Below, piece after piece: positions 30,537 through 62,508 of a stretch of DNA of 64,000 nucleotides (position 1 is its first letter; each line of letters opens with the position of its first letter). The DNA comes from Octopus sinensis (taxonomy: Eukaryota), in NCBI RefSeq assembly GCF_006345805.1, contig NC_043007.1:44330001-44394000 (forward strand), read 5' to 3'. Under the pieces are notes generated by a model, which saw only the letters and a list, made by a program, of their open reading frames with translations, was not told the origin of the DNA and searched no databases. The translations under genes and the position numbers were made by a program.

Positions 30537-33360
30537 TCATCATCATCATTTAAAGTCCATTTTCCATGCTGGCATGGGTTGGATGGTTTGACTGGAGTCT
30601 GGGAAGCCTGGAGATTACACCAGGCTCTAATCTGATCTGGTAGTGTTTCTACAGCTGGATGCTCTTCCTAAAGCCAACCACTCTGAGAGTGTAGTGGGTG
30701 CTTTTTATGTGCCACAGGCATAGGAGCCAGAGGGGGCTGGCATCAACCACATTTGGGTGGTGCTTTTATATGCCACCTATTCAGGAGCCAGAGGGGGCTG
30801 GCATCGACTATGTTGGATGGTGCTTTTACATGTCACTGGCATGGGAGCCAGTCAAGGCAGCACTGGCATCAACCACAACTACAATTTCCATTTGATCGTG
30901 GTTTAATTTGATTTTGATGTTGATATACTTGACTTAATAGGTCTCCTCAAGCATGGCATGTTTCCCTATGATCCAAAGGTACTTTTTGAGTGGGCTGGTT
31001 ATGCAACACTGGTGTAGATTGCAGCTGTGATCTCGCTTTATTTGCCAGGTCTTCTTAGTCACAGCATATCTCCAGAGGTCTCGGTCTTTCGTCATTGGCT
31101 CTGTGAGGCCCAATGTTCGAAGGTCATGCTTCACCACCTCATCCCATGTCTTCCTGGATCTCCCTCTCTACCATGGGTTCCTTCAACTGTTTGGGAGTGG
31201 CTCTTCTTCACACAGGTCTCCTCATCCATCCGTAGTACATGACCATATCAACGCAGACGTCTCTCTTGCATGCCACATCCGATGCTTCTTATGTCCAACA
31301 TTTCTCTCAGGGCGCCTACACTCTGTTGTATGTGCATACTGACATTACACATCCAGCGGATCATTCTAGCTTCATTTCTTTCGAGCCTACGCATGTCTTA
31401 GGCAGTCACGGCCCATGTTTCGCTGCCATGAAGCATGGCAGTTCACACACATACATCGCACAATCTACCTTTCGCTCTGAGCAAGAGGCCTGTTGTCACC
31501 AGTAGGAGTAGAAGCTTTCTAAACTTTGCCAAGGCTATTCTAGTGGTGACACTCTCTGAGCATTCACCCCCACTATACACTTGGTCACTTAGGTAGCAGA
31601 AGCTATCAACTACTTCGAGCTTCTCCCCCTGAAGTGTGATGGAATTTGTTTTCTGAGCATCTGTGGTGTTTATTGCCCCTGTGCATCTGCCGCACAGGAA
31701 AGCTATCTTCTCAGTTAATCTTCCTTTGATGTTGCTGCACCTATTATGCATCCATAGCTTACACTGGGTGCATATTATGGAGTTTCTACCTACACCTTTT
31801 CTAAAGATCGAGCAGAGACATCTACTTGAGGAGTGTGAGATGAGTTCGCCCTCCTGCTTACTAGGTCTTTGGTTTTTGCAACATTGACTCTAAGGCTTTT
31901 TGATTCTAAACCTTGCTTCCACACCTGAAATTTCTTCTTTAGTTCTGGTAGTGATTCTGCTATGAGAGCCAGGTCATCAGCATAGAGGAGCTCCCAGGGG
32001 CAACTTGTCTTGAATTCCTCTGCAGGACTATGATGGATAAGAGGCAGCTGAGGGCTGATCCTTGATGGACCCCTACTTCTACCCAGAATTCTTCACTATA
32101 CTCATTGCCAAATCTAACATTACTAATGGCATCTCTGTTTAGGGCCTGTACAGCCATTATTAACCATTTTTGAATCCCTAGTTTCCACATCGCCCACCAG
32201 ATAAGGGATCTGGGGACCCTGTCAAAAGCTTTCTACAAGTCCACAAAAGCCAAGTATAGGGATTTGTCATTGGCTAGGTATTTACCAGGAATATAACATC
32301 AGTAGTGCTTCTACCTGGCACAAAACTGAACTGCATCTCATCTAAGCAGACTCTCTCCCTAATTAGTTGGGCTATGACCCTTTCCATGACCTTCATCACC
32401 TGATCCAGCAGTTTGATACCCCTGTAGTTATTTCTATCTAAATTGTCACCTTTACCCTTGTAGCAATTGACTATAGTACTTCTACACCAGTCATTGGGTA
32501 TGACTCCATCATGAACTACCTGGGTTACAATACAGGTGACTAGGCTATTACCCACACCATCATATATTTTAAGCATCTCAGCAGTGATTCCTGATGGGCT
32601 GGGAGCTTTTCTTGGCTTCATACCCTTAATTGCTTTATCTACCAGGGTGCTGTCTATTTGGATAGCTGGTCCCTCTACTGGGTCAACCTTTGGCAGACTC
32701 TCCTCCTCCCATTCATTCTCCACGTTCAGCAGTCTTTCATAGTAGCTTCTCCAAGCCTCTTTCTTTTCAGAATCATTAAAAGCAAGTGCACCATCATCCA
32801 TGCAGACACATTTCTCTCCTGTGACATCACAATTTTCTCTTACAAATTGTCTTGCAATCCAAAATACTTCAGTTCTTTGGGCCTCACATCGCTGAACATT
32901 GGCAAACTTCTTTTCTGCTTCTCCCTTGGCTATGTATACCTGTTGCCCAACCTCCTTCCTGGCTATCTGGTACAGTTCCTTGCTACCCCCACTCTTCCAG
33001 TCTTTCCAGGCCTGTTTCTTTGCTCTAATGGCTTTGTCTACCATATTATTCCACCACCATGGAAGGTCTGGAAGGGAATTTGCACCATCTGCAGACTTAG
33101 TGTGTGGCACTTAGTAAGCTGTTCCATGGAATTTCCAGCTACCCTCTATGTCCGAGGTCTTTAGCTCCTCTTCCTTCTCATCAAATTTCTTTATGAGGAT
33201 ATCCCTAAATTTCTGACCATGTGAAGGGTTCTTTAGCTTCCAAATCCTTCTTTTCTGGATTGGTCTGCATCTTGGTATCCTTATGGCCTTGAGCCTAAAG
33301 TCACTAATGACTAGTCTATGCTGGGGGGTACATTCTTCACCCGGGAGGGTCTTTGTATTA
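30537..33360 (-). mobile_element. RTE-clade LINE, degraded second copy
   Basis: ORF 32274..33110 (NYRGIKLLDQVMKVMER, QFSFVPGRSTTD); endonuclease remnant QHRLVISDF; LYADD at ~31980; same 3' UTR and (CAT)n at 30537. Confidence 0.9.
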
Positions 33361-35830: not shown

Positions 35831-38318
35831 TAGGAGACAGGTTTATTTAGCCAGAGGGGAAGCAGATGAGAAAAAATTTGCCAATGTTCTGCACCATGAG
35901 GACCAAAGACTTGAGGTATTCCACGTTGCAAGACAGTGTGTGGGAGAGAATCATGATGTGGTAGGAGAGAAATGTGTTCGCATGGATGATGGTTCACTTG
36001 CGCTAAATGATGATGCAAAGAGAGAGGTTTGGAGACACCACTATGAAAGGTTGCTTAATTAAGAAAATGAATAGGATAAAGAGAGTCTGCCGAATGTCAA
36101 CCCAACAGAGGGACCAGCTATCCGAGTTGACAGTTCCTTGGTAGTTAAGGCAATTAGAAGCATGAAGACAGGGAAAGCCTCAGGCCCATCAGGAATCACT
36201 GCAGAGATGCTCAAAATATCTGGTTGTGTCGGCTATAGCCTAGTCACCCGTATAGTTAACCAGGTGATACACGAAGGAGTCATTCCCAATGACTGGTGTA
36301 GCAGCATAATAGTCAACTGCTACAAAGGTAAAGGTGACGCCCTAGATACAAATAATTACAGAGGTATCAAGCTGTTGGATCAGGTAATGAAGGTTATGGA
36401 GAGGGTCATAGCCCAACTAATTAGAGAGAGAGTTAGTTTAGATGAGATGCAGTTTGGATTTGTGCCAGGGAAAAGCACCACTGATGCCATATTCCTGGTA
36501 AGACAGCTGCAGGAGAAATATCTAGCCAAAGATAAGCCCCTGTACCTGGCTTTCGTTGACATGGAGAAAGCCTTCAACAGGGTCCCCCGATCCCTTATCT
36601 GGTGGTCAATAAGGAAACTAGGGATAGATGAATGGTTAGTGAGAGCTGTGCAAGCCATGTACAGGGACGCTGTTAGTAAGGTGAGGGTTGGCAACGAGTA
36701 CAGTGAAGAATTCCGGGTAGAGGTAGGGGTCCACCAAGGTTCAGCCCTCAGCCCCCTCCTATTTATCGTAGTCCTCCAGGCAATAACGGAGGAATTCAAG
36801 ACAGGATGCCCCTGGGAGCTCCTCTATGCTGATGACCTTGCTCTAATTGCTGAGTCACTATCAGAACTGGAGGAGAAGTTTCAGGTGTGGAAGCAAGAAT
36901 TAGAATCGAAGGGCCTTAGAGTCAACCTAGCTAAAACCAAAGTCCTAATAAGTAGGAAGGTAGACAAGTCACAAACGCCTTCAGGTAGATGGCCTTGCTC
37001 GATCTGTAGGAAAGGCATAGGTAGAAACTCTATAAGATGCACCAAGTGTAAGCTATGGACACACAAGAGGTGCAGCAACATCAAGGGAAGGCTAACTAGG
37101 AAGATAGTTTTTGTATGTGGCAGATGCTCAGGAGCAATAAACACTGAAAATGCGCAGAGAGCAACTTCCGCCACATTTCAGGGAGAAAAACTAGAAATAG
37201 TTGATAGCTTCCGTTACCTAGGTGACCAAGTCAGTAGCGGGGGCGGGTGTGTTGAAACTGTAACTGCTAGAGTAAGAATAGCTTGGGCAAAGTTCAGAGA
37301 GCTCTTACCTCTGCTAGGGACAAAAGGCCTCTCGCTCAGAGTAAAAGGTAGACTGTATGATGCATGTGTACGAACAGCCATGCTACATGGCAGTGAAACA
37401 TGGGCCGTGACTGCTGAGGATATGCGTAAGCTTGTAAGAAATGAAGCCAGTATGCTCTGATGGATGTGTATTGTCAGTGTTTATACTTGACAGAGTGTAA
37501 GTACCTTGAGAGAAAAGTTGGACCTAAGAAGCATCAGTTGTAGTGTGCAAGAGAGACGTTTGCACTGGTATGGCCATGTAGCGAGAATGAATGAAGATAG
37601 TTGTGTGAAAAAGTGCCACACCCTAGCTGTTGAGGGAACCTGTGGAAGAGGCAGACCCAGGAAAACCTGGGATGAGGTGGTGAAGCACGACCTTCGAACT
37701 TTAGGTCTCACCGAGGAAATGACAAGAGACCGAGCCCTTTAGAAGTATGCTGTACATGAGAAGACCCGGCAGGACAAGTGAGACTATAACCCATGGCCTC
37801 AGTCCACTTATGCATACCATTCCTTCTTGGGACACAAAACTCTACTTGTGAAGACCTGTTGAGGCAAGTGAAAATCAAAAAATCAAAAAATCAAGATCAA
37901 AATCGATCAACATGAATGGAAATTGTAGCTGTGATACCAGTGCCGGTGGCACATAAGAGAACCATCCGAACATGGCCGTTGCCAGCTCCGCCCTGAGTGG
38001 CTTCCATGCTGGTGGCACGTAAAAAGCACCATCCGATCGTGGCTGTTTGCCAGCCTCGCCTGGCCTCTGTGCCGGTGGCACATAAAAGGCACCATCCGAC
38101 CGTGGCCGTTTGCCAGCCTAGTCGGGCACCTATGCCGGTGGCACGTAAAAAGCACCCACTACGCTCATGGAGTGGTTGGCGTTAGGAAGGGCATCCAGCC
38201 GTAGAAACATTGTCAGATCAGACTGGGCCTGGTGCAGCCTTCTGGCTTCCCAGACCCCAGTTGCACCGTCCAACCCATGCCAGCATGGAAAGCGGATGCT
38301 AAACGATGATGATGATGA
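35831..38318 (+). mobile_element. RTE-clade LINE, 5'-truncated; largely intact RT core (ORF 36138..37460) with an embedded PHD-type finger, long 3' UTR and (GAT)n tail
   Basis: RT motifs QFGF..GKSTTDAIF, AFVDMEKAF, GVHQGSALSPLLF, LYADD, YLG; premature stops at 37458 and 37488 (CGA>TGA type); tail gctaaacgatgatgatgatg. Confidence 0.93.
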
Positions 38319-40428: not shown

Positions 40429-40576
40429 GAAACTGCAACAATGGTTTTAAAGACAATTGAAACTTTGTCCCTTTCAACCATCCAAGGTACTTGTACAATT
40501 GAGCTTCTTCTGGGAGACATCACAAGTCTTGAGATGAATGACAAAGTTGATTTGCTCATCGTGTCAGCTTTCCCTA
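40429..40576 (+). CDS. Coding exon 1 (12-nt leader, ATG at 40441): start of macro-like domain, [45 protein letters not shown]
   Basis: Acceptor T-run..ttattcAG|40429; donor cctA|GTAAGT at 40577; macro-type GDIT and D-hydrophobic strand motifs. Confidence 0.85.
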
Positions 40577-42340
40577 GTAAGTATCTAAGCATTAAATATT
40601 CACATTAAAATTGGCTGAAAATTAAGCAACGAGATGGTTAAAAAACATTAAAAACCTTGCTACAGGAGTCAGTGTGTTGTATTGCTGTTTTTTTCATTGT
40701 GAATGTTGTATCATTAATCAAATATTGATCTATCATTGTGTATTGTCTCACTGATAAATCAATGTGTGTTGTTACATTGTTATATGATTGATCAATCATT
40801 AAATGTTTTATCATTGATCAGTCATCATGTCTGTGTCATTGATCAGTGATTTTATGTTGAATTTTGGATCAGTCACAGTCTGTGTTGTATCATTCATTAG
40901 ACATTATATAGTATATCTCTAATCAGTCTATTGTATGTTGTATCATTGCTCTGTAACTATGTGTTATATCATTGATCATTCATGGAGTATTGTGTCACTG
41001 ATCAATCATTGACCAACCATTGATTTTGTATCATTTATCAATCATTAGATGTTGTTTTACTTTTTGTCACTGATCAGTTGTTATGTGTTGTATGATTGAT
41101 CAATCATTGTGTGCCATGCTGTGGGACTGAACCCAAAACCACATGGTTGGGAAGCAAACTTCCTTAGCCATAGGCCTACAGGCTTTGGTCAGTGCAGGGC
41201 TTATAGTAGAAGACACTTGCAGAAAATTTCACACTGTGGAACTGAATCCAAAACCACATGGTCACATAGCAAACTTCCTTAACCATACAGCCATGCCCGT
41301 ATCTTCAAGCTGTGGTCACCCCATAGCTACAGCAGAAGACACTTGTCTGAGGTGCCATGTTGTGGCATTGAACCTAAAACCATATGGTTGAGAAGCAAAC
41401 TTCTTAACCACACAGCTAAGCCTATACTTGTTTGTCATTCTGCTCTTCAGTTTCCCCTTTTTATATACTCTTAAACTGTACAACTTTCATAATTTATACC
41501 CAAATGTTCTTTTATTTCAGATAATTACAACACTACGAGTAAAACTGTAATCCAAGCACTGAACAAGAATCTAAATGTTGATGTTTCTAGGCTTGCTGCG
41601 GATAAAGAATTAGATTTAAGGAAATATTTTTCTTGTTGGTTATCCAAACCATTACCAGAAGATATTCCTTTTTCAAGACTTGCATGTTTTGAAAGGTAAT
41701 ATTACTTTTTGTATTAAGTTTTTATCCTTTTCTTCTATCCTGCCCTGGTCAGCTTTGCCCTTCACCCCCACTCATCATAGTTGATGGTATCCTCTACTCC
41801 CCACCCCCTCAAAATTGCTGGACTTGTGCCTTAATTAGAAAAAAATGATAATAATATATCTTTTATCTTTTACTTGTTTCAATCATTGGACTGCAGCAAT
41901 GCTGAGTTTAATCGAATGAATTTCCCTCAGTACTTATGTTTTTCTAAAGCCTGATACTTATTCTATTAGTCTCTTTTACCAAATTGCTAAGTTCAAGCAG
42001 TGACGGAACACTTGCCCAAGGTCCCAGATAGTGGGAATGAACCTGGAACCATGTGGCTGGGAGACAAACTTCTCACCACACTGCCTCAAGGATTATTCTC
42101 AATAATAATAATAATAATGATGATGATGATGATGATGATAATAACAATATGGCTTCTGATAGGCGCTGGCCCTCATGGCTTCTGATCTTAACTGATTGGA
42201 AGTGTTATGTACATTATTTTGTTTTGGTATAAAAGATGGGCTACAGCAAATATTCTGAATACTAGGGTGGGTGCAATCATATACCAAAATTTTAAACCCT
42301 CCTCCTCCTCCTCCTCCTCCTCCTCCTCCTTCTCCTTCTC

Positions 42341-42371
<31 letters not shown>

Positions 42372-43320
42372 TTATTATTATTATTAGTGGCATTTAGTCC
42401 ATCTCTATGTTCTGAGTTCAGATTCTGCTGAGGTTGACTTTGCCTCTCATCCTTTTGGGGGCTCAATAAAATAAGCAACAGTTGAGTATTAAAGTCAATG
42501 TAATCAACTTACCCACTCCCATGAAATTGCTGGCCTTGTGCCAAAATTTGAAATCATCATCATTATTATTATTATTAAGGTGGCAAGCTGGCACAATCAT
42601 TAGCTTGCTGGACAAAACACTGCTACGCATTTTGTCTACATTCTGAGTTCAAATGCCACTTGGTCAACTTTACCTTTCATCCTTTCAAAGTTCCTTCATA
42701 GTTGGCATTGTTTTAAATATTTCTATTTTTATTGAACTTCATTAATTTCATGTTTTATGTTACAGAAACCTAGGCAGTAGTATTTATGATCAAATCGGAG
42801 ATATGTTTCGAGGTTTTATGCCAATATTCAATTCTCAAGACACAACAGTAATAACTCCTTTACTTGGTACTGGAAACCAAGTGAGTATCTTTTTATTCAG
42901 TTTTTGTGTTCTTACATAATTCTCTATGGAATACTTGGATTAATTAACTATCATCATCATCATCAACATGCTAACATGAGTTGGACAGTTCAAAAATATC
43001 CAATACGTCTAAAGACAGCACCATACTAAAAGTGTCTATTTTGGAATGGTTTCTATAGCTAGATGTCCTTGCTAACAGTAACCAGTCTACTGAGTGTACT
43101 GGGTGTTTTATTCATGGTACCAGCACTAACAAGGTAACCATGCAGCTCACAAATGAGAGATGTTTCAAGTAGCTCTGTTCTGCTTTAATGACTCTCATTG
43201 TTGGTGGTAGATAAAAAGGAAGACCTGTTTTCATGGAAGATTGGAAACAAATAATATTGCTTGTATGATGGTGCTACACATTTACAGTCATTACATGATG
43301 TCAAAATAAGAACACACACA

Positions 43321-43378
<58 letters not shown>

Positions 43379-46300
43379 TTACATATTCTTTTCTTTTATT
43401 CTTTTACTTACTTCAGCCATTTGACTGTGGCCATGCTGCAGTGCTGCCTTAAAGGATTTTAGTTGAAAAAAATCGAACCCAGGACTTATTTTTTGTAAGC
43501 CCAGTACTTATTCTATCGGTCTTTTTTGCTGAACCACTAAGTTACTGGGACATAAATACACCAGCATAGGTTGTCAAGTGATGGTTGGGGAACAAACACA
43601 GACACAAAGACACACACACATACAGCAGGCTTCTTTCAGTTTCTGTCTACCAAATCCACTCACAAGGCTTTGGTCAGCCCTAGGCTATAGTAGAAGACAC
43701 TTGCCCAAGGTACCACACAGTTAGACTAACTGTGGTTGGGAAGCAAGCTTCCTACCACACAGCTTTGCCTGCATCTCCACACAGCCACATATATTGTTAG
43801 CTTCATCATCATTTTAGTGTCCACTTTCCCATGCTTGCATGGGTTGGATGGAGTTTATTTAGGCAAATATTTTACAGCTGGATGTTCTTCCTGTCACCAA
43901 CCTTTACCTGTTTCCAAGCAAAGTCATATTTTGCCTTGAACATACGTATATTCTTACAGAATATCGGAAATGAATGACACTGCTTGTATGACAGTGGCAA
44001 TTATTTATTAGTCATGTCAAGACAAGGTGACATAAACACATAAACATGCATGCATGCATACATACATCCATCCATCCCATTATCATTCCTGATATAAAAA
44101 ACAAATGACTACATGCTAGGGTCTGCAACATCAAGAGATATTAATGTAACCCATGATTTCTTTGTGGATTTATGCTAAAATGTTAACAATGCCAAAAAAT
44201 CAACTGGAATTAATAACATTTTCAATTGACATAGGAGTGGAATTTGGCCAGAAGAAATATTATTTGATTGTTGAACAGGGAAAGATAATCTCCCAGACAC
44301 AAAATAATCTTACTATCTTTCTTGTCTCACACAAAGACTGCTACAGGTACCTAGGCATTGATGAAAATATATCATACCAAGGTACTGTGAATAAAGATAG
44401 TGACCCAAGAATATTACACCAGACTAAGAAAAATATGGCAGTCTGAGCTCTCCTTTTACAACAAGACAATATCCCACAATGCATTTGCAGTACCAGTGCT
44501 GATTCCAACTTTTGGGATACTTGACTGGTCTGTAGAAGAAATCCACTTCATAGACATTAACACCCACAAGATTCTAACATCAACTGGAAATCTCTACAAA
44601 AATAGTGATGTTGACAGGCTCTGCCTAAGAAGAGATAAAGGAAGTAGGGGGCTTGTGCTCTGTGCAGATAGTCTTTGAATGTTACACAGTCTCTCTCAGA
44701 CAGCACTTGTTAAACAACAGCAACAAAATAAATACATTAATTTAGTGCTGGAAAGTGAAGGGAACATCCTACGCGTTGGAAATGAACTCTTCAGGAAGTA
44801 CTCTTCCCCCGATGAGCTCCCATACAACCCCAAATCAGCCAGACTAGCTTACTTAGCTTACTTCAAAGAAGACCGGAGGGGAAGTGCTCAAGTATACAAA
44901 AAAAAAAAACATGCATAGGTATGTTACTTGAAGACTTCAATAAGATAGAGACATTGACATGAAGCCTCTCTTGGACTCGCAACTGCTACATCACACCATA
45001 CTTTGAAGGCTATGCATTTGCAATCCAAGAACAGGAGATTACTGCTAAACACCTAATCAACAAAAGATACAGTGAAGCTCTTGGAGTTCCAAGATGCAAC
45101 TGTAAATGTAGATTATGTAATATTTCTGTGGACGACATCACACATGTGATTAGCAGCTCCCAAAATTGTCATCAAGGTACTACCTCCCTATGTGACATGC
45201 CGTTGCAAAAACCAATATATAATGCCATTTGGGAAAAAGACAGTCCTGGAATAAATAAAGAGTATTTCCCTGTATTTGAATATGTACATAAACATCAACA
45301 CAAGAAATACTGGTGGAATATTCCCATCAAAACATCTGTCAAATGTAAACATAACAGGCTGGATATTGTTGTTTCGGACAGACAAGAAAAAGTATGTGCT
45401 GTCACAGAGGTTAGCTGTCCAGCTGATGTTAATATCTTTGAAAAGCAGAGAAAAAGAAGATAATTATGAACAACTGCATCAAAACCTCCAGATTTTATAT
45501 CCGGATTACAAATTTACATTTATATGAATAATAGCTGGAGCACTTGGTTTTGTAAGTAGTCTAGATAATCTTGAGTTTTCAGAAACAGAAATCAACCAAC
45601 TGATTCACACATTACAAATACAATCTGTAAGCTAAACACTAAAACTATGCAAGACTTTTCTAAAGTTTAAAATGTGACATTGTTTTTGTTATCTACATTC
45701 CAAAGATGGAGCTTTCTATCTTTGTTAGAAACCAGCTCCTTCTTCAGAGGAAGAATTTAAACAATCAAAAACAGAAGAGAGAGAGAGACACACACACAAA
45801 CACACACATGCACGCACACGAGGTCACAGAATGTGTCATAAAAGAACTTTGATTGGGAGCAAACTTCTTCACCGCATAGCTATACCTTCACCTAAAGATG
45901 GTGCTTAATTGCTGGAAACAAAACAAAAATATTTCTATTTCTCTTTTTTTCTTTTTCTTAATTTTGTAGGGCTTTGGTTATATTCCAGTTCTTAACACAA
46001 TGGTTGAGTCAGCTTGTAACTGGATGAAAATTGGTCTTCCTTTGAAAAGCTTCAAGATTGTACTTTACACTAGTAATATAAATGAAATTAGTAATTCCAA
46101 TAAAAATTGTCTTGAGAGGTTTAAAGTGCTGAAGAAAACCTGGGAAAAATCTACCCTTTCAAAGGTAGTATAGCTCTTTCTTACATTTTTACATTATTTG
46201 TTATTAGTGGCAGAAGCAATATTGGTTCAAAATAGTAACCGTTGAATCATATTTAAAGTAGATACATCATTGAAAGCCTCATAAACTGTAGTATTAGTCT

Positions 46301-49300
46301 GGAGAAAACAACTGTTATAGATGTATAATATTAAAAAACACCGAGACATATCAGCAGTAGATGAAAATCATCTGGCAGCAGTGGTGGCATTAAATTGTTA
46401 GGTTCTAGAAAGTGAGATATAAAACTCCATGTGAGAACCACCTCAGACACTACACAGAACCCTGTCACTCAGTTCTATATGTGATGTTTTTGTACTTGAT
46501 TTGCCTGTCACAATTCTGAACAATTATCATACAATTAACTGAAACAATATTTCTATATTACTCAGTGAAAACTTTAAATTATCACAAACATAATAATATG
46601 TATATTTTTCATTTCAATTCATAGTGCATATGTAAATTTATTTATTTATGCGCTCTTTTCAAGCCTAGCCAGGCTCATGGACCTGGTTTCCCAGATTCTG
46701 TGGCATATGTGTTCCCCCCAGCTGGATGAGATGCCAAGAAACAGGAAGAAAGAGTGAAAGAAAGTTGGAGCGTAAGAGTACAACAGGGGTGCCCCCCCCC
46801 CACCCCGACTGGAGCCTCATGGAGCTTTTAGGTGTTTTCGCTCAATAAACACACACAACGCCCGGTCTGGGAATCGAAACCGTGATCCTCCAACTGCAAG
46901 TCCGCTTCCCTAACCACTGGGCCATTGAGCCTCCACACATATGTAAATATGGAAACATTATCATTAGCGAGGTCATTTTCAGTTTAGCACACAGCCTTCC
47001 TTCCTACTATTGTGTATCACCAATGATGCTCTAATGGCTACTACGTACTCTTCGTTGAAACAATGAATTCTCCCTTCTTGCATCATCAGATTAATGAATA
47101 ACTCCTACTTAGTTCCCTGACAAAAGCTCATCTGTGTCATCAGTTTGGAGCTTTTCTCAAAGGTATACAGGTTGAATTGCCACCCATTGTTTCACATCGG
47201 TGAACGTGTGTGACTAAGTGATTGGGATATTCAGCCAATGATCGTAAAGTCATGAGTTTGATTACTGGCAGTGCATTGTGTCATTGTGTCCTTAAGCAAT
47301 AAACTTCATTTCATGATGCTCCAGTATACTCAGCTGGCAAAAATGAGTGGTTCCTGTATTTCAAAGGCCAGCCTTCTCATGTTCTGTGTCACACTGAATC
47401 CCTCTGGGAACTACATCAAGAGTATGCATGTCTGTGGAGTGCTCAGTCCCTTGCATGTTAATTTCACGAGCAGGCTGTTCCATTGGTTGGACCAACCGAC
47501 AGAAGCCTTCATCAGCGTAACTGATGAAGTGCCAGTTTTACATCTTAAGCCCACAGCTAATGCAGTCTGCCAAGCCAATACTTGTCTAGGAGGTATTAAG
47601 CATGATGGCTTACTTTAAACAATGATTGTTGTTATGACTACTTTTTAATTTTTTTTACAGATTGCCAAAAAAAATCATGTGAACGATGTGTATATTTCCT
47701 ACTGCAATACAGATTCTAAGAAGGCAAATTTGTTAAAAGCTTCATTGGAAAAGAATAATCCAAGCATAAGTATTTTCAATAAAAGGATAAAAGTTGACAG
47801 AGATGTTTGGCCTGAAAAAATATACTCTTGTATGTTTGGATGCAAGTGGTAATTCTATTTTTCTTATTTTTCTCAGTATTAAATATTTAATATAATGTTA
47901 TTTTTTGCTGATACAAAGCAAGGCCACAAATTTTGGTGGTCAGTTTAATAAACATCATTACTTAATACATTGGACACTGGTAAGATAGAAAATAGAAGGA
48001 ACCCATGTGGCATTACAACTCATAATGTAATTGTATGAACTTCAATACTGCAAAGTGTTACCATTTCTGCTATGTACTATGGACAGTTATTGAGAGAGCC
48101 TTTACAAGAACATTCTACCTTCTAGAAATTGTAGCCAAATCTCCCTCATATCAAATCCTGCCATCTTTAAATAAAGGATACATTAGACAATGTTAGTCCT
48201 AGACAAATAAAAGAATGGGATGGTCATGGATTGAATGACTTTGATCATAAATGTGCTCAATCAGAGCTTACTTGGGGCTAAACAACAACAGCAACAATAA
48301 TGTGAACAACAACAACAACAACAACGTCATCATCATCATCATCATCATCATCATCAGTTAACATCTGTTTTCCATGCTGGCATGGGTTGGACAATTTGAT
48401 CAGGGATGGCAAGCTGAGGGGCTGCACCAGATTCCAGTCTGATTTGGCATGATTTCTATGGCTGGATACCCTTCCTAAATATCCTTTTAAGGCAGTGCTC
48501 CAGCACGGCCACAATCAAATAACTGAAATAAGTAAAAGAATAAAAGAATGTGTGTGTGTGTCTATGTGTTGCCTTCTCTTGACATCACATAATAATTGTA
48601 AATGAGTGTCACTCTCATACAAGCAGTGTTATCTCATTTCCAGTATTCTGTGCAAACATGTTTGGCTATAGAGAAGTACAACCTTGCTTAGAAATGATTA
48701 AGGGTTGTTGAAAGCAAGGGTTCTTGACCAGAGAAAATCTGCCTCAGTAAACTCTGTCTAACCCATGAAGCTTGGAAAAGTGGACATTAAAATGATGACA
48801 AGGAGGAGGAAAATCTGATTTGAGAGAGATTTGGTTGATCTTTCTAGATAGTTGAGTGGCCATCTAGAGGTTTCTTTGTTAGCTTGTAAAGAAATCATCA
48901 TTCACAGAGGTGAATTATCTAAAATCCTTCATTCTTCTTTACCAACAGCATTGTTATAATTTTAACTACATCCTACTTAAGTTCCAAATCCTGCCAAGAT
49001 GAATTCAATATGGCTCTCTGCTATAGACGACAAGCTGAAGATATTATTTTGGTTCCCTGTATACTGAGACAATGGAAAATCTACCCCCAGTTATAAGTAA
49101 CATACAATATATGGATTGTCGGTAAGTTTCTTCTTGTACACATTTTTATTTTTGTGTTTCTGTATTTAAAACATCAATATAATAATCTTTTTTACTAAAG
49201 GCAAAGGCCTGAAATTTTTGGGAAGGGACTAGTTGATTATATCAACCCCAGTGTTTCACTAGTGCTTAATTTATTGACTCCCAAAGGATGAAAGGTAAAG

Positions 49301-50451
49301 TTGATCGCGGTGGAATTTGAACTCAGAATGTAAGGATGGATAAAATGCCACTAAGCATTTTGCCTGGATGCTAATGATACTGCCAGCTCATAAATATCTG
49401 TATAATAATAACTGATATAAATGTTGGATGGTTGATTTTACCAATCATACTTTACATCATTGAGAGAAAGTGGACAGTAAGTGAAAGAGTGATACAGAAA
49501 GAGTTAACATAAGGTGTACAGGATGAGTTCACATACTAGGCTTTGTGGTAGGTAATTAGTAGAAGAATGCTACACACACACATGCACATATACACACATT
49601 AAGAGAGAAAATCACAGAGACAAAAGAGGAGGAGGAAGAGGAAAGAGAGAGAGAGTAAATGACAGAATAGTTACAGGAAGAATTATACAAATGAGAAATT
49701 TGTTTTATTTAGTTTTATTTTAGGGTAATAAATATTTTTCTTTTTAAAGTTAGTATTAATTTCACCCTTTTGGATAAGCACCCACAAATTTCATTAAAGT
49801 AGAATTATAATTATAGTATGTGTCATATTTCTTGATATTACTCATGGTGGTAAAAGTATACTGCCAAAGTTACCCCTCATATGATGGGGTTCCTATAGCT
49901 AGGCTATTTCTTTAATTGGAACTTGCTGTTTTTTACCTTCTTTTTTTTTTTTACTTTAGATTAAATGAAAATGAAAATATTAAAGAAAAGTTTCGAAGTG
50001 TTTCTGCGGATATCAATAAGAAGCTACTTCCATCATTACTGCGTCCCACAACTGCTCAAGCACAAACATCTAAGAAAACAACATATGATATTTTTGTGTC
50101 TTACCCTACAAAAAACACAGAAGAAATGAAAGTAGTGTATGAAATTTTGACTGAACACAATAGTGACTTGAAGATATTTTACGATAAATTGGAATTAGAG
50201 ACAGGTATGATTAACCGTTTAGCATTCAGAATACTCAATCAGATTTAATACTCTTTTACTTGTTTCAGTCATTTGACTGTGGCCATGCTGGAGCACTGCC
50301 TTTAGTTGAGCAAATCGACCCCAGGACTTATTCTTTGTATGCCTAGTACTTATTCTATCAGTCTCTTTTGCCGAACTGCTAAGTTATGAGGACGTAAACA
50401 CACCAGCATCAGTTGTCAAGCGATGTTGGGGAGACAAACACAGACACACAA

Positions 50452-50490
<39 letters not shown>

Positions 50491-53400
50491 CATATATATA
50501 TATACGACGGGCTTCTTTTAGTTTCTGTCTACTAAATCTACTCACAAGGCTTTGATCGGCCCGAGGCTATAGTAGAAGACACTTGCCCAAGGTGCCACGC
50601 AGTGGGACTGAACCCGGAACCATGTGGTTCGTAAGCAAGCTACATACCACACAGCCACTCCTATGCCTGTTTATTCATTCATATTGCCTTGAATTGGTAC
50701 TTACTCTGTTGTTTACGACAATGAGGGTTCCAGTTGATCTGATCAATGGAACAACCTGTTCATGAAATTAATGATCAGGTGGCTGAGTATTCTACAGACA
50801 TGTGTACACTTAATGTAGCTCTCAGGGAGATTCAGCGTGATACAGAGTGTGACAAGGCTTGCCCTTTGAAATACAGGTACTACTCATTTTTGCGAGGTGA
50901 GTGGACTGGAACAATGTGAAATAAAGTGTTTTGCTCAAGAACACAATGCATCACTGGGAATTGGACTCATGATGACCTTACGATTGTAAGCCAAATACCC
51001 TAACCACTAAACCATGTGGCTTCACTTGCTTTGAATTAATCATGTATTTCTGCCTTCATTTTTGTTAACTCTCACTTTCTTTCTCTCCCTTTCTTTCTTT
51101 CCCTCTCTTCTTCTCCCTCTCTTCCTCTCTCTCTCTCTCTCTCTCTCTCTGGCTGGGTAACCATGTACATCTATTTCTGTCTCTCTGTCACACTCTAACC
51201 TTTCATCATCTGACACAAGATCTCCTCCAACGCCCCCTTCTCTCTCAAAAATTCCTTTTCTTGCAAAGTTACTTGGTGACCCTGCTAGTGCAGGTGCCAC
51301 TTAAAAAGCACCCAGTTCACACTGTAAAGTGGTTGGCATTCAAAAGGGCATCCAGCCATAAAAACCATGCCAAAGCAGACACAGAAGCATTGTGCAGGCT
51401 CTTTTGCCTGGCTAGCTCCTGTCAAACTGTACAACCCATGCCAGCATGGAAGGAGGACGTTAAATGATGATGACGATGACAATGATGATGATGATAATAA
51501 TGATGATATCTCATAGTTTCAGAATTTCACTGATGTAGCTGTTTACTTTTAGAATAACATTACAGGGTAGGTGTGAGAGACTTGATCTCACTGGTTTTAA
51601 CATAAAACAGGTAGAATATTTGGGTTGGATATGACTGGTTTGAACTTGCATAAAACATGATTTAATAAGTTTTATCTAATGTGGAGCTGATGTTGATAAA
51701 AAAAAAGAGTGAACTGCAGGGCAAGAAGTTGATAATGCAGCTCCACCACTTCCTGTTGACTGAGGAAAAAATATGGTTAAAGGATTGGCCATATTATAGC
51801 TGAAGGTCTGCAATTCTAAATGTGAACATAACATTAAAATTACAAGAGGACTTCATAAGTTCACTCTCTATATTGAGTTGTGCAAACAGATGGTGTGCCA
51901 TTAATGTATAACAACTTTGGATAAGTTCTTCCCCTCTCGAGTAGACACTACTAATGACATTGTCAGTGTTGTTGTTGTTGGTGGTGGTGGCGGTAGCAGT
52001 GGTGGTGGTGCTGTTGCTGCTGATGGTGATGATGATGACGACGACGGCGGCGGCGATGACGACGATGACGACAACGATCCAGAACAACTACTATAAGGCA
52101 TCCCAGTCTAACATTCTTACAGATCTGCTGATCCACAACTTTGGAGTGGGATTTTTTTAATGACTCTGAAAGGATGAAGGGCAATGTTGTCCTCGGACAG
52201 ATTTGAACTTGGGTTACAGAGAATTCTATCCAGCATTTTAATGACTGTTAATTAGACACTTTATCAGATGTGTTATCTAAGATTATATTATTCAACATGT
52301 CTTCTAGTTTAAAGGTGATTTGATGGAGATTTGACTGTTGTTTCATGTAGATCAAGTGACCATGTAGCAGTTCTCTCAATGACATATCTATGGTAGTGTC
52401 AGAGGCAGTCATTTAACTCCCAGTGCACCAAGCTGCTGATCTAGGTTTAATACCTAGTTGTAGTTACTCTTATTCTGCCCTATGAGAGCCTTTTGAAGAT
52501 GAGTGAACAGCACAACTCCTAAACTCAACAGAATTTATAATCCATCAATAGATATCTCTGTTCTTTAAAAGTCAACCAATTGTCTCTATTTATCATGCTA
52601 GTGTAATCAATAAATACATATTTGTTCTTTATTATATTTCAGGTAGTGATTGGCAGCAATCCATCTACAAAGCTTTGGAATGTTCTAAATGCTGTGTCAT
52701 CCTCATTGCACCAGCATACTTCGAATCTCTTATGTGCCAAGAAGAATTCAGTATTGCCATTGCTTTGAGTATCTCTGAAGAAAGAGTGAGAAAACCCTTG
52801 TGATTAATTTTTTAAATTTTGTTTTTAAGTTTTTTTTGTTCTACTGTTTAACCCTTTTGATAACCAACCTACCCACCCTAACACAAGATTGTCTTATGTT
52901 TTGGTGATACAAACACTGACATTTTAAAATGTTGATATTTAAATTAAAACAAAGCTGTAAGCTGAAAGAATTGTTCACATGCTGGGTGAAATTTCATGTT
53001 CTGAGTTCTAATTCCGCTGATATCGACTTTGCCGTTTGTCCTTTTGGGGTTGATAAAATAAGTACCAGTTAAGCACAGGAGTTGGTGTAATCAACTTACA
53101 CCGCTGCTCTGAACTTGCTAGCCTTGTGCCAGAATTTGAAACCTATATTTAAATTAAAACCATCTATCAAAACTTTATTTAATGAATCTTATTTTTTAAA
53201 GTTAGATTTCAAACACCAGGAATAAAAATAAAGACAGATTGGTTAATAATTAAATGCTTACAATTCTTCATTATCTTTTAAATTAATTGAAACATATCTG
53301 TAAAATATTTCTGTCGTAGTGTAACAATTCTCAATTTCATTGATACAGAAGGCTGAAAAGATTGGCTGTAAATAGACTTTACTTTTCTAAGAACAAGAGG

Positions 53401-56400
53401 ACAGTACCCATCAGTTGTAGCTTTAGTCATGAACCTTGCCAGTCAGCAGACAGCCATGTTTTAGATACCACTTCTAAGCCTCGTTTTCAACTCTCTGTAG
53501 TAATATTCACATGATCATGTGATCGACCAGGCTATCAAAAAAAAAAAAAAGATGTTGCTACACATCACTGGTCACAATGCACTTTGCATTGTTTTAGCCT
53601 TCAAATGATGCCACTCTGCTGGCTAAGTGAGCAGGTCTACAGAAGAAAGAGTGAGAGAAAGTTGTGGCAAAAGAGTACATCAAGGTTCACCACCACCCCT
53701 TGCCAGAGCCTCGTGGAGCTTTCAGGTATTTTTGCTCAATAAACACTCACAACGCCCGGTCTGGGAATTGAAACCGTGACCCTACAACTGCAAGTCCACT
53801 GCCCTAGCCACTGGGCCATTGTGCCTCCAGCTGTAGTAATAATAACAGTAGTAAATATAGCATGTATAGTTATAGTAATAATATCAGTAATTATTACCAC
53901 AATTTCATCAGAAGTGTCTAAGTGAAAGGATCAGATAGATTTTTGAGTTCTTCAGTTATGAATTTGTTAAATAATGACTCATCGTTACATCCACATAAGT
54001 CCTTACAGCAACTTTTCTGTTTTTGATGTATGCTTTTTATTGCACTAAAGTTAACATTAAGATTTTGTACATCATAGACAAAGAGGTTATGTATGGTTCT
54101 GCAATTTTGAAGTTTGATACTTCCTCAGTGCTGATGACTAAGTTGAGATGTTTTTTTTTTTGTTTTGTTTTGTTTTTCTTTGTCTCTCAGTAAATTGTTG
54201 AATATTTTCCCAATTGCCTGCATGTACTTGTAAGGTAATTTAACCAAAAATGTGTTACTTTGTCACATCCTACTGTTCTATTTATATCTGGTCATTTTAT
54301 GGTCACCTTTTAAATATTCCACCTGCTAGTTCTGTGTAAGCCAAAAATTTAGGAGTGAAAATTTGTTGAGGAAGATTTGGCTACACTAAAAAGGGGAATG
54401 TGTAAGATGAAAAACTAAAAGAATACAAAGCAGAATCTTTGGGAAGTCTGCCATTACTGGAATAATGTACTTGGTCTCACTAAGAATATGACTTCTTGGA
54501 GTTTTCCAAATTCCTTATGTGTTAGTGCTATTTATCTCTAGATGATTCTTGATCAGAGATCCTACCTTTGATCAAACACATACCAGAAATGATCATTCCA
54601 TATTTTTTGTCAGACATTGTGTATCTAGGTTTACATTGTCCAACAGATCCATTTTTTTCTTTAGATAGAAGAATGAGATTCAAAGAACATTTGATTGCTA
54701 TTTCTATCTGACCAAATGACCACATACAAGCTCCATAATTGGTTCATCCCACATGTAGTATGTCTAAGAAGGTTTAACCAGAGCAGTAACAAAAACACAA
54801 CAAACACCCAACATCCTCACACTCAACTCTAAAATATAAATACAAGTGTTTGAGACTAAAAGAATAACTCAATTGTCCTTCAGGACAACAGGCTAGTGGT
54901 TAGGACCTTATATCCAGTTGATAAAATAAGTTTCAGATTTAATCCTTAGCCTAGCTCAAGAATATCACTTGAAGACTGTTGAAGAGAACACCCATTGAAA
55001 TGTGTCATTGCTATGTTCAAGTTGAGAAAAATACTCTGATTTACAGACATCACTTTGAAAATTCGTTTCTGAAAAAGTATACTTACATAATGGTAATTTA
55101 TAGGATACATACAGATGCACACACATACATACATATATACATATGCATACACACACATATATACATACATACACATGCATACATACATACACACATACAT
55201 ACGTTCATGCATGCATAGGCACACACAAACACACTGACCCGCACACATGCGCACAAACAAAAAGGAACGCAGTGTAAATAACGGACAGAGTCAAGACTGT
55301 TGGAAAGGTTGCAAGATGCAACGAAAATTTTAGGAAAATAAAAATAAGAAATAAGTGGAATTTTTACCGGTGCGTGTGTTACATTATAAGGCACAAAAAG
55401 AAAATGACTCTCCCCAGACACAACAGAATATGCTTCAACACACGAACTCATATAAAGAATCTTGCAAACCAAATCCAAAAACGAACAAATTAATTTAATT
55501 TAACTCAAATCAATTAATTGTGTACGACAATTATGTAATTATACATTCAATGATGTTTATCATTATGAAACAGCTATTGAATACAATTAAAGTGTGAACT
55601 ATATGTAAAATATATGCTTTTCTCCATTTCTGCCAAATATGTTTGCTCTTAAAGATCATTTTAGCTGATTATGTATATACCTGCATGTCATCCCACTTGG
55701 ATTTACTGCAATTTAATTACGTTAGAGTTTAACGATCTATTATTAACTGAACTCTTAATTACTGTCAGTTTATAATTTGAGTTGTATATATCAATCTCTT
55801 ATGAGGATTTTTCAGAAAAAATATAGACATACCAAAACCATCACTTGCAAGTGAGCATGACTTTGTAACATGTACTATGCTTCTGATGACCATTTCACTT
55901 GAATGTTAATGAATTAATCAATTTAATTGTTCATTTCAGACAAATCCTATGGTTTTGGTACCTGTCTGCATTGATGATGTGCCGTCAACACCTCAGTGGT
56001 TTGGTCCTCTACATATGATAGATGCCCGGGGAGATTGTTTGGTTCCTGTTCTGAGCTGCTTATCACCTCTTCTAAATAAATGCTACAAAGACCAAACTTT
56101 GCAACATGAATTTAGTTGGATGACGAGTAAAAGCAAAGTAAGTGTGTCATATCTCTTTCTCTCTCTCTCACGCACACAAGCACACATACACACACATGCA
56201 TGCACACACACACTTCACTTGCATATACCTTCATACATATAATATATATATTTATATATGTATATATGTACATGTATGTATATATGTGTGTGTGTATATA
56301 TATGTATATATTTACATGCATATATATATATATATATATATATGTATCTATATATATAAACGGCAAAATGCCTGCGTGCGTGTCCTTTATTCAAATCCAC

Positions 56401-56862: not shown

Positions 56863-58663
56863 TATATATATATTATATATATATATATATAATATATATA
56901 TATGTATATATACATACATATATATATGTATATATATGTATATATACATACATATATATATGTATATATATATACATGTATATATATATATACATGTATA
57001 GATATGTACACACACACACACACATGCACATGTACACCTGTGCACGCATGCACACACACATACTCTTCTTATATAATCTAGATTTTTAGAATATGCACAC
57101 TATCACTACATGTGAAAGAAGACTGAAAAAATTGGTGTTTGGATTGGCATTTAGCTGTAAAATATTGCCTCAAAAGTGTCCTGTCCAATGTGCCAGCATG
57201 ACAAAGTGAACTAAAAAACAATGGTGGTGGTGATGGTGACAATGATTATGATGATAACGATGATGATGATGATGTCAACAATGACGACAACAAAGACACA
57301 CCATTTGCGGTTAAGAAGTTTGCTTTGCAACTATGTGGTTCTAGATTTGATCTCTCATTAAGGCATATGGGTTTAATGTTTTCTGCTGGAGGAGCCTCAG
57401 GTTGTTCAATACCCTGTGAATGGAATTTGGCACTTGGGAACCGTGAAAAAGTCATCATTTAGGCACAGATGTGGCTGTGTGATAAGAAGCTTGCTTCCCA
57501 ATCACACAGTTCTGGGTTCAGTCCCACTCTCTGGCACCTTGGGCAAGTGTCTTCTACTATAGCCTTGAGCTGACCAAAGACTTGTGAATAGATTTGGTAG
57601 AGGGAAACTAGAAAAAGCCTGTTTTATATACAGGGGTTGGACAAAATAATGGAAACACCTTAAAATTTTAAACAAATTTATTTTAATATGGGGTAGGACC
57701 GTCTTTGGCAGTAATTACAGCTTGAATTCTATGAGGTATGGGTTCATACAAAGTTTGAATTGTTTCCAAAGGAATTTTTGTCCATTCTTCAGCTTAAACA
57801 GTCTTCAGTTCTTGGATATCGACTCCTTACTTGTTTTTCTAAAATGTACTATAAATGTTCAATAATAGTGAGATCTGGAGACTGTGGTGGCCAGATAAGA
57901 TGTTCAACTTCACTAGAATGTTCCTCGTGCCATTCAGTAACAACTTTAGCTGTGTAAATTGGTGCATTATCATCCTGAAAGATTGTGTTTCCCTCCGAAA
58001 ACAGTTCCCCAACCATATGATGAATTTGATCACATAAAATGCTTAAATAGTCTTGACTACTAATTCTGCCATGAAGGGAAACCATTGGGCCAGTGGATTT
58101 CCAAACTATAGCCTCCCAGATCATCACAGATCTTCCCTCATGCTTAACAGTTGGAAGAAGGCAGTCTAGGTCAAATGCTTCTTTTGGATGTCTCCACATG
58201 TATACTCAGCTGGTGGTTGGAAATAATGTAAAGAATGACTCATCCAAGAAAATAACATTCTTCTACTGCTCTAGGGACCAATTCTGTAGGTTTTTACTCC
58301 ACTCGAAATGCTTTGCAATGTTTGTTTTTGAAAGTAGTGGTTTTCTGACTGCAGCCCTCCCATGAAATCCGGCTTTGTGCAGCTCCCAGTGAACAGTTCT
58401 TGTGGAAACTAGGTTCTGAAGGTGGTCATTAAGCTCTATAGTAATTTTGGGAGCTGTACTTTTGTGATCATTTCTTACAATTTGTGTAAGAGTCTGATGG
58501 TCCCTATCTGAAACTTTTGGTTTTCTTCCAGAGTTTTGTTTCGATGAGGAGGTTTTTCCCTCTTTCTTAAAGGCTGTCATTTTTGGGAAATGTCTCCTAC
58601 TTTAGCTCCAGGTCAACCAAAGCCTTGTGAGTGGATCTGCTAGACAGAAATTGAAAGAATCCA

Positions 58664-58785: not shown

Positions 58786-59883
58786 CTATACATATATGTG
58801 TGTCTTTATGTTGGTTTGTTTATGTCCCCATAACTTAATGTTTTGGCAAAAGTGACTGATAGAATAAGTACCAGGTTTTAAAAAAGTACTGGGGTTGATT
58901 TCTTTGTCTAAATCTTTCAATTTGGTGCCCTGCATGGTTGCAGTCCAATGACTGAAACAAGTAATGAATAAACAATAAAGATATTGCAAATTATCATTAT
59001 TTTCCTTCCTTTAATTGAAGAGCGAGACATTTATAATTTACTTACCTCTTTTTCTTTTATTTCACAGTTGAACAATGGAAATATTACTCTCTTGGATCAA
59101 TTATCACTTCTCAGACAAATTCAACTTGAAGATAATTACGAACTCAAGGGAAAAAAGATAACTGCTAAAGCGGATTATGATATTTATAAAAAACCATGCA
59201 AAATACTCTTTTGTTTTGCACCCCAAGATATGAAATTTGCTGCCATTTTGATTTCAATTCTTCAAGATCTTTTCTCAGAGATGCAGGTCCTTCTCTTCAG
59301 CACATCAATTCATGACAGATTGGCTTTACTTGAAGAAGCAGATGTAATTGTAATGTTTGTGTGTGATGATTATTTTGAATCTTCAAAATCTCTTGAGGAA
59401 CTAAACATAGCTTTCAATCGTCAACGGAAATCGAAACAGAGACTTTTGCATTTTGTCTGTACTGAAAAAATACCAACATTCCTTTCATATTTTCAAATTT
59501 TACCCTATAATGTAGTGTTTAGTGACAGCTGCTGGCATACAAAGAGGGGTAAATATGTAAATACAAAGGGTATGGTTACTGTCACTGTTTCAGAAATATG
59601 TGGAAAATATTCATATGAAATTCCTGAATATATGGCTTTGCAGAAATTAGCTTTAGATATTATTTCTTCCGTTTCAGCAAAGTAAGATATAAATCTTTTT
59701 ATTTAATTGATTTATTAATTATTTTATATATTTATTTATGTATTTATTTATTGTTAGAGCAGTAGAGAGGTAGAAATGGCAGTCTATTGGATTTTTCACA
59801 TACAGTGCAGCTAGGACTAAGTCAACAAGAATTACTCTTCATTTCGAGGATAATCTAGTTGTTATTTCTTGTTGTAAAATGAT

Positions 59884-59917
<34 letters not shown>

Positions 59918-61859: not shown

Positions 61860-62070
61860 TTGAATTGACGCTATGATTGATTGCTAACCACTAAACCTTT
61901 TTTTAATTTTCTCTCTCTGTTTATTTCTGTGTTCCTTTCTGTTGAAGGGCATAGGCTTGAAACGTAAAAGACTTTCTCACTTCCTGAGCGTTAAACTAAT
62001 ACATCTGTTTGTTGTTTACACACCTGTCTTCATCTTTTGTTGGTTTTTTTTTGTAAATTCCAACAATATA
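61860..62070 (+). mobile_element. Second, more diverged pLTR-like repeat copy
   Basis: ctgttgaagggcataggcttgaaacgtaaaagact...ttcctgagcg..ctaataca..tttgttg, similar to 2010-2275. Confidence 0.55.
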
Positions 62071-62087
62071 TATATATATATACATAT

Positions 62088-62508
62088 AGGTGTAGGAGTG
62101 GCTGTGTGGTAAGTTGCTTGCTTATGAACCACATGGTTCTAGGTTCAGTCCCACTGCATGGCACCTTGAGCAAGTGTCTTCTACTATAGCCTCGGGCCGA
62201 CCAAAGCCTTGTAAGTGGATTTCGTAGACGGAAACTAAAAGAAGCCCATTGTATATATGTATATATACATATATATATATGTGTGTGTGTGTATGTTTGT
62301 GTGTCTGTGTTTGTCCCTCCAACATCGCTTGACAACCGATGCTGGTGTGTTTATATCCCCGTAACTTAGTGGTTCGGCAAAAGAGACCAATAGAATAAGT
62401 ACTAGGCTTGCAAAGAATAAGTAGTGGGGTTGATTTGCTCAACTAAAGGCGGTGCTCCAGCATGGCCACAGTCAAATGACTGAAATAAGTAAAAGAGAGT
62501 AAAAGAGA
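62088..62508 (+). mobile_element. SINE family A copy
   Basis: Near full-length family match. Confidence 0.85.

Follow-up and report, generated by a model that had tools for sequence, protein, structure and literature searches.

Immune signals derived from nicotinamide adenine dinucleotide (NAD+) are chiefly written and read by TIR enzymes and macro domains, whose joint action has been shown only as separate proteins, in Thoeris. Small-molecule sensors fused in cis to a catalytic TIR, with ligand-driven assembly, are known from TIR-SAVED (CBASS and type III CRISPR), TIR-STING, Pycsar TIR and the ARM-TIR protein SARM1. There is an animal precedent for TIR-STING (bioRxiv 10.64898/2026.04.20.719644), and TIR-STING, the SARM1 TIR and SIR2/FAM118 are bacterial immune modules that have been kept in animals (PMC13142454). 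In type II Thoeris, the macro domain of the transmembrane-macro (TM-macro) protein ThsA binds a TIR-made ADP-ribose derivative, oligomerises and activates the effector (PMC11204291), and ThsA offers the strongest precedent for a sensory macro domain. Here, we analyse a 64,000-nucleotide stretch of the Octopus sinensis genome (NCBI RefSeq assembly GCF_006345805.1, contig NC_043007.1, positions 44,330,001 to 44,394,000 of the forward strand; "the window", in which positions are counted from its first letter). A gene at window positions 40441–61671 encodes an N-terminal macro-like domain followed by TIR domains, and this macro-like-TIR cassette belongs to a family that is found in bacteria and in animals from corals to hemichordates.

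The cassette differs from the described systems in several respects. In Thoeris macro and TIR work together, as they would here, but there they are separate proteins of an operon, with the macro domain fused to transmembrane helices, whereas the octopus family combines them in one polypeptide and has no conserved neighbour in 80 loci. The sensor-TIR effectors follow the same architectural logic that we propose for the cassette, but use SAVED, STING or ARM as the sensor, whereas the cassette carries a macro domain and no linked cognate signal synthase. As with the immune modules kept in animals, a TIR module is common to scattered bacteria and to animals, with the greater diversity on the bacterial side; in contrast to them, the clades treated in the literature examined do not include the cassette, and the whole two-domain unit is conserved rather than the TIR alone. 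With canonical macro domains (Af1521, YmdB/MacroD, macroH2A1.1, PARP9/14/15) the family has in common the alpha/beta/alpha fold (Foldseek probability 1.00, TM 0.65–0.77; TM, template modelling score), the adenine-contacting Asp of GDIT, and probably the position and part of the sequence of the second phosphate loop, P..(S/T)G..G. It is set apart from them by an identity of 10–16%, by its own invariant set of S, Y, D, R, W, S, C and E residues and by the fusion to TIR.

Results

The N-terminal domain has a predicted macro fold

A sequence-only reading of the window had placed an atypical macro-like domain at 40441–46164, corresponding to residues 1–207, and these boundaries proved exact. Spliced together, segments 40441–40576, 41521–41695, 42766–42880 and 45970–46164 give 621 nt, or 207 aa, without a stop and with AG/GT borders, and the product holds every motif quoted in that reading. 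LLGDIT (40507–40524), a ten-residue segment (40546–40575) and a 16-residue segment (41607–41654) each lie in one reading frame; SAFPNNY and a further ten-residue segment are each interrupted by an intron and readable only in the spliced product. Nor is this a chance open reading frame (ORF): the 207 aa align end to end, at 91% identity, with residues 1–207 of the annotated Octopus bimaculoides protein XP_014768475, and they strongly match hundreds of other proteins.

Profile libraries do not recognise the domain. The single 207-aa sequence had no match in Pfam, NCBIfam or PADLOC even at E<=10, the PADLOC models of ThsA included, and none of 81 family members matched a Pfam macro-clan model at E<=1, the gathering threshold of Pfam Macro (PF01661) not being reached. 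A single-sequence search of PDB with the 207 aa stayed at noise level (a methyltransferase at 0.2, the PARP15 macro domain at E 1.2). Structure models were made for the N-domain of the 91%-identical O. bimaculoides ortholog from an 81-sequence alignment and for the bacterial relative P0002. The AlphaFold2 model of the ortholog domain (predicted local distance difference test, pLDDT, 95.9; predicted TM score, pTM, 0.92) has only macro domains or fusion constructs among its top 50 PDB matches in Foldseek, the latter presumably with a macroH2A crystallisation carrier. These matches, with probability 1.00, E down to 4e-9, TM 0.65–0.72 and identities of 10–16%, include macroH2A1.1, Af1521, PARP9/14/15, MacroD2 and YmdB. 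In the full-length model of P0002 (pLDDT 91.8, pTM 0.70) the N-terminal half matches macro domains (TMt 0.73–0.77) and the C-terminal half matches the MyD88, MAL and Hydra TIRs. A family profile also reaches the PDB sequences of PARP14 (E 1.3e-4) and Af1521 (E 6e-4). The models thus show the octopus N-domain to have a predicted three-layer alpha/beta/alpha macro (ADP-ribose-binding) fold, in line with the macro-like assignment of the sequence-only reading. A SLOG/Rossmann-like fold was considered instead and rejected. A structure search of the viral collection BFVD returned ordinary viral macro domains with lower TM and no close viral relative.

The macro-like domain and TIR form an obligate cassette

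A single-sequence search of 5.8 billion proteins returned one animal-like transcript at 53% identity and six proteins of ~340 aa at 34–42% identity, the latter on gene-dense prokaryotic contigs and each consisting of the N-domain and then a TIR. The octopus domain matches family members with E-values of 1e-21 to 1e-45. A profile of the first relatives extended the family to at least 634 clusters, nearly all of ~340 aa and of the same layout; Thalassoroseus, Longimicrobiaceae and Solimonas are among the named sources, and one cluster is labelled O-acetyl-ADP-ribose deacetylase by JGI. An exhaustive hidden Markov model search of 1.84 billion cluster representatives gave 1,212 matches at E<=1e-3, with 333 at E<=1e-30. 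Common to the family are the motifs GD(I/L)T, VSAFP.DY, DLR..(S)CW.S, CFE and P...(S/T)G, followed by TIR within ~20–30 residues, and the window protein fits this pattern. A kinship with bacterial TIR-associated proteins, which the sequence-only reading had put forward, is borne out: the nearest non-animal homologs are bacterial ~340-aa macro-like-TIR proteins with SAFP.DY, DLR..SCWLS and CFE motifs, and the best hits do not fall in conventional animal macro families.

The association with TIR is close to universal. TIR_2 lies next to the N-domain in 73 of 74 long representatives and occurs in all 70 full-length proteins of an 81-row alignment (A5; the remaining 11 rows are trimmed N-domains). 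The Glu at the TIR catalytic position (C-x-[ED]-E-F) is kept in 69 of these 70, and a putative catalytic Glu is present in all three TIRs of the window protein (SCQDEF in TIR1, MCQEEF in TIR2 and SLEELN in the TIR3-like domain). These alignments establish an obligate coupling in cis of the macro-like domain to a TIR of predicted catalytic type. Octopus TIR1 and TIR2 match the bacterial family TIR at 35–40% identity (E ~1e-24), as strongly as they match the TIRs of other animals, so the whole cassette is shared and not the macro-like half alone. An intronless, mollusc-like version with one TIR was seen in a Logan transcript from SRR34486198 (L004, protein P0001), in which Leu takes the place of the catalytic-position Glu (CLDLF) and a GDIT stands in frame ahead of the called start.

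Full-length members match NCBIfam and PADLOC models through the TIR half only (PDC-S66, ThsB, TIR-SAVED, retron-TIR and ThcB4), far under the family cut-offs. None of Pfam, NCBIfam, PADLOC and the literature searched turned up the family, its signature or its distribution over bacteria and animals, and that literature likewise yielded no description of a macro-TIR fusion family. The superfamily and the sensor-TIR design are already known; this family and its signature appear to be new.

At least 172 relatives were confirmed when one genome per species was scanned by pattern. The 80 named loci cover Proteobacteria, Cyanobacteria, Chloroflexota, Planctomycetota, Verrucomicrobiota, Acidobacteriota, Gemmatimonadota, Bacteroidota, Actinomycetota and Myxococcota as well as one methanogen, Candidatus Methanocrinis natronophilus (L018), whose full-length cassette homolog is 54% identical to P0002 and is the sole archaeal one among the 80 listed. 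In longer bacterial proteins the cassette is appended to Hsp70 ATPase, kinase and FHA, VipA/VipB sheath-like, CHAT and NB-ARC (CHAT/STAND) or GT4 modules. Three bacterial metagenome representatives (P0195, P0182 and P0179) carry it C-terminal to VipA and VipB domains resembling the type VI secretion system sheath, one of them with an N-terminal Ser/Thr kinase and FHA in addition; these could be real fusions or merged gene calls.

No neighbour was common to five individually inspected bacterial loci, some of which adjoin transposases or integrases. When 780 ORFs within 6 kb in 80 genomes were clustered, no family occurred in more than seven loci, and the recurrent neighbours were generic (ABC ATPase, hybrid histidine kinase and Ser/Thr kinase). 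The bacterial cassette thus behaves as a stand-alone unit. At two loci, on an unclassified metagenome contig (L002) and in the planctomycete Thalassoroseus pseudoceratinae (L005), the cassette gene adjoins that of a ~1,170-aa DUF7133/HEAT protein, which may reflect synteny of related genomes rather than a functional link.

The canonical active site is replaced by a different near-invariant set

Aligned by hhalign with Escherichia coli YmdB over 154 columns, the family sets GDIT on GDIT, VDxLVVSAFP on VDVIVNAANP, RiLCFEP on vvHTVGP and MPLLA(S/T)GdQG on FPAISTGVYG. PT..SLIGAL falls on MGGGGVDGAIH, with Ile or Leu at the position of the catalytic Asp, and because of this pairing the Gly-rich loop and the catalytic Asp are taken to be lost. 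The octopus domain accordingly has neither the catalytic Asn (NAAN) and Asp of MacroD and YmdB nor their GGG(V)D loop 1. This agrees with the description of the domain in the sequence-only reading as an atypical one in which SAFPxxY replaces NAAN. What remains is the adenine-contacting Asp of GD(I/L)T, which aligns to the GDIT of Af1521 and YmdB, and a glycine of the putative second phosphate loop, where a ten-residue octopus segment aligns with PAISTGVYG and PAVSAGIYG, with Gln in place of the aromatic residue and with G140 conserved at 98.5%.

Across 327 family sequences G25, S42, W85 and E103 are identical in every one, D37, A43, Y48, D77, S87 and G140 reach at least 98%, and C101 (97.9%), R79 (96.6%) and D26 (95%) follow. 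In total, ~15 positions, several of them polar and non-structural, are at least 95% identical from bacteria to animals, and the window protein retains all of these except G64, which is Asn in octopus. From their places in the predicted secondary structure and in the YmdB alignment, we infer that the near-invariant residues lie at the C-terminal ends of the central strands, that is, in the macro ligand cleft.

Gene structure and history in animals

Mapped onto the window, the O. bimaculoides proteins resolve into 12 exons with canonical AG/GT borders throughout, the first starting at 40441 and the last ending in a stop codon at 61669–61671. By sequence, the window gene is the ortholog of O. bimaculoides LOC106867918 (XP_014768475 / XP_052827584). 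The domains run in the order macro-like (exons 1–4), TIR1 (5–6, beginning 9 residues past aa 207), TIR2 (7–9), a divergent TIR3-like domain (10) and an acidic tail (11–12):

Exon 1, 40441–40576, + strand: start codon and macro-like beta1–beta3 (including a 16-residue segment); ends in phase 1 within codon N46, with a GT donor; supported by tblastn with residues 1–48 of O. bimaculoides P0129
Exon 2, 41521–41695, + strand: NNY...DLR..FSCWLS...ACFE, with the family invariants Y48, D77, R79, W85, S87, C101 and E103 as judged from conservation in the 327 sequences
Exon 3, 42766–42880, + strand: helix and strand, ending in TPLLGTGNQ (putative equivalent of the second phosphate loop, G140)
Exon 4, 45970–46164, + strand: GFGY..., final helix/strand/helix of the macro-like domain and linker; ends at aa 207
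Exon 5, 47661–47848, + strand: first half of TIR1 (DVYISY...)
Exon 6, 48949–49121, + strand: second half of TIR1 with the putative catalytic Glu (SCQDEF); carries a 1-nt frameshift
Exon 7, 49960–50204, + strand: linker between the TIRs and start of TIR2 (YDIFVSY)
Exon 8, 52643–52785, + strand: middle of TIR2 with the putative catalytic Glu (MCQEEF)
Exon 9, 55940–56137, + strand: end of TIR2
Exon 10, 59068–59681, + strand: divergent third TIR-like domain (SLEELNIA)
Exon 11, 60118–60196, + strand: short linker exon
Exon 12, 60958–61671, + strand: acidic low-complexity C-terminal tail and stop; corresponds to the long O. bimaculoides isoform XP_052827584

Homologs occur in six animal phyla, from corals to hemichordates. 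The named members are the molluscs Octopus, Lottia, Batillaria, Haliotis and Solemya, the corals Porites and Pocillopora, and Lingula, Tubulanus, Acanthaster, Antedon, Lytechinus, Saccoglossus, Glandiceps and Ptychodera; no vertebrate, arthropod or nematode is among the named hits. A neighbour-joining tree of 111 N-domains unites the animals in a single bipartition in 98.5% of 200 bootstraps, with the cnidarians the first to branch and with support of 0.895 for the molluscs and 0.885 for the ambulacrarians. Exon-derived fragments from coral and abalone start at GDY and end at GDQ or GNQ, which is where introns 1 and 3 interrupt the octopus gene (SAFP/xDY and G(D/N)Q/G, with the slash marking the intron), and TIR1, TIR2 and TIR3 are positionally orthologous between the animal phyla. 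Given the single animal clade, the shared introns and the TIR orthology, the three-TIR protein with its introns is older than the bilaterian radiation, and the cassette in animals is at least as old as the cnidarian-bilaterian split.

The sequence-only reading had left a choice between ancient shared ancestry and horizontal acquisition followed by intron gain. That choice is narrowed in part, to a single animal clade of the age given above: the midpoint root falls between animals and bacteria, and the tree is therefore compatible with animals either nested in bacterial diversity or outside it. Bacterial diversity is wider and deeper (mean distance 1.09, compared with 0.82 in animals), which makes bacteria-to-animal the more economical reading. 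Most likely, the animal gene was acquired or inherited once, before cnidarians and bilaterians diverged, and its TIR was later duplicated in tandem.

The gene is embedded in DNA of ~37% G+C with dense microsatellites and transposon fragments. Upstream of it are ORF fragments of non-LTR (long terminal repeat) retrotransposon reverse transcriptase at 16704–18361 (+), 32274–33110 (−) and 36138–37460 (+), the last and largest being an ORF of 440 aa. A series of broken ORFs resembling a retroelement reverse transcriptase and C-terminal region lies in intron 3 at ~44150–45530 (+) and accounts for the 3.1-kb length of that intron. Tc1/mariner-like transposase fragments (DDE region and helix-turn-helix region) occur at 57849–58580 (−), in the intron that separates the exons of TIR2 from that of TIR3. 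Short repeat units resembling short interspersed nuclear elements are scattered over introns and flanks (41109–41480, 42000–42100, 43578–43724, 57246–57458, 59862–60089 and 62030–62442) and translate as ...LNPKPHG..ANFLNH... in both orientations.

Discussion

The account that best explains these observations is a macro-like-TIR cassette family with a sensor mechanism and an ancient origin in animals, and as a whole we give it an even chance of being right. Its functional part, in which the macro-like domain is a nucleotide-binding sensor or regulator acting in cis on the TIR NADase, is a proposal by analogy that falls slightly short of even. Through the aspartate of GD(I/L)T and the G140 loop, the adenine end of a ligand derived from NAD+ or ADP-ribose would be bound in the pocket, whose remodelled distal half (S42, Y48, D77, R79, W85, S87, C101 and E103) would recognise some group other than the free ribose of the MacroD type. 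Occupancy of the pocket would then govern self-association of the attached TIR domain or domains and thereby their activity as NADase or cyclase, on the pattern of TIR-SAVED, TIR-STING, SARM1 and Thoeris ThsA. It is a more doubtful step, and on balance an unlikely one, to see in the cassette a self-contained immune sensor-effector that runs from bacteria to early animals, with a pocket that may sense a novel ADP-ribose-derived signal or pathogen-made ADP-ribosylation and thereby trigger NAD+ cleavage or signalling of the cyclic ADP-ribose type by the TIR.

Several points weigh against this account. The mechanism rests on analogy, and the placement of the conserved residues in the cleft derives from secondary-structure position and the YmdB alignment, not from coordinates. 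Eight near-invariant polar residues, a Cys and a Glu among them, exceed the usual need of a simple pocket and would fit a catalytic site at least equally well. The structural models are of the O. bimaculoides and bacterial relatives and not of the window's own product, and the linker between macro and TIR in P0002 is of low confidence, so that, with a pTM of 0.70, no fixed macro-TIR interface is predicted. The assembled octopus gene is itself interrupted: relative to the O. bimaculoides ortholog (at a ten-residue segment) one base is missing from exon 6 between 49057 and 49058, the assembled frame ends at a stop at 49094–49096 to give a 318-aa product, and the summed coding sequence of 2975 nt is one base under a multiple of three. 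Past the frameshift, the shifted frame is open for ~670 codons up to the normal stop at 61669–61671, which suggests either a fault in the assembly or a mutation of very recent date. Lastly, the defence islands that the sequence-only reading had suggested looking for around the bacterial homologs found no support. Neither a defence-island context nor a signal-generating partner was seen at the bacterial loci inspected, where generic neighbours recur in at most 7 of 80 loci (without a formal PADLOC enrichment test), and any immune role in bacteria is thus hypothetical.

The strongest rival makes the macro-like domain a non-canonical enzyme, which through S42, Y48, D77, R79, W85, S87, C101 and E103 would convert or destroy the product of its own TIR (ADP-ribose or an isomer of cyclic ADP-ribose), or add or remove ADP-ribose on a target. 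Many macro families are hydrolases, and hydrolases (Af1521, MacroD2 and YmdB) are among the structural matches. The extreme conservation of the polar set, including Cys101 and Glu103, in 327 sequences from bacteria to animals speaks for such an activity, as does the obligate fusion to a catalytic-type TIR, which would co-locate substrate and enzyme; macro domains in TIR systems have also been predicted to act on cyclic ADP-ribose (PMC9503650). However, neither the Gly-rich loop nor the catalytic Asn/Asp pair of canonical macros is present, and it would be unusual for a signalling enzyme to carry, in each of its copies, a domain that destroys its product. We know of no macro enzyme with a Cys/Glu site, and regard the enzymatic alternative as possible, if on the unlikely side.

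It is improbable that nucleotide binding has been lost altogether and that the domain serves as a structural or oligomerisation scaffold that places the TIRs. The absence of the canonical loop 1 and the presence of macroH2A macro domains among the best structural matches would suit this idea, and to our knowledge the macroH2A1.2 and macroH2A2 forms do not bind ADP-ribose. A scaffold would not, however, be expected to keep ~15 positions, several of them polar, at least 95% identical from bacteria to animals, nor the adenine-contacting Asp of GDIT in 95% of sequences.

Two further alternatives can be set aside. An ordinary animal macro domain (MacroD, PARP9/14/15, ALC1 or TARG1) that diverged in cephalopods, for which the weak single-sequence match to PARP15 might be cited, is very improbable and is ruled out by the Pfam negatives over all 81 members, by nearest relatives that are bacterial macro-like-TIR proteins at 34–42% identity as against 10–16% for canonical macros, and by the range of the family from corals to hemichordates. 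Bacterial contamination or a very recent horizontal transfer into the octopus genome has next to no probability, in that the nearest non-animal homologs are bacterial but gene structure (twelve exons and canonical GT/AG introns rich in animal transposon fragments, in AT-rich DNA of animal composition) and phylogeny (an O. bimaculoides ortholog, a single clade of six phyla, and introns shared with corals and abalone) rule it out.

The cassette matters because it unites in one polypeptide, presumably fixed for more than half a billion years, two kinds of domain that are otherwise known to act jointly as separate proteins, and because no macro domain characterised so far has a distal pocket half like its invariant one. 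A ligand-binding pocket would define a new class of sensor for TIR effectors and possibly point to a new ADP-ribose-derived messenger; a catalytic one would represent new macro-fold chemistry. For annotation, ~1,200 clusters labelled only "TIR domain-containing" could gain a second domain. The cassette is a candidate for the short list of immune modules common to bacteria and animals, and offers an entry point to the uncharacterised multi-TIR proteins of molluscs, echinoderms, hemichordates and corals. Should the immune sensor-effector interpretation be true, the octopus gene would be a survivor of a class of ancestral metazoan innate-immune receptors that is unseen among the named hits from model animals.

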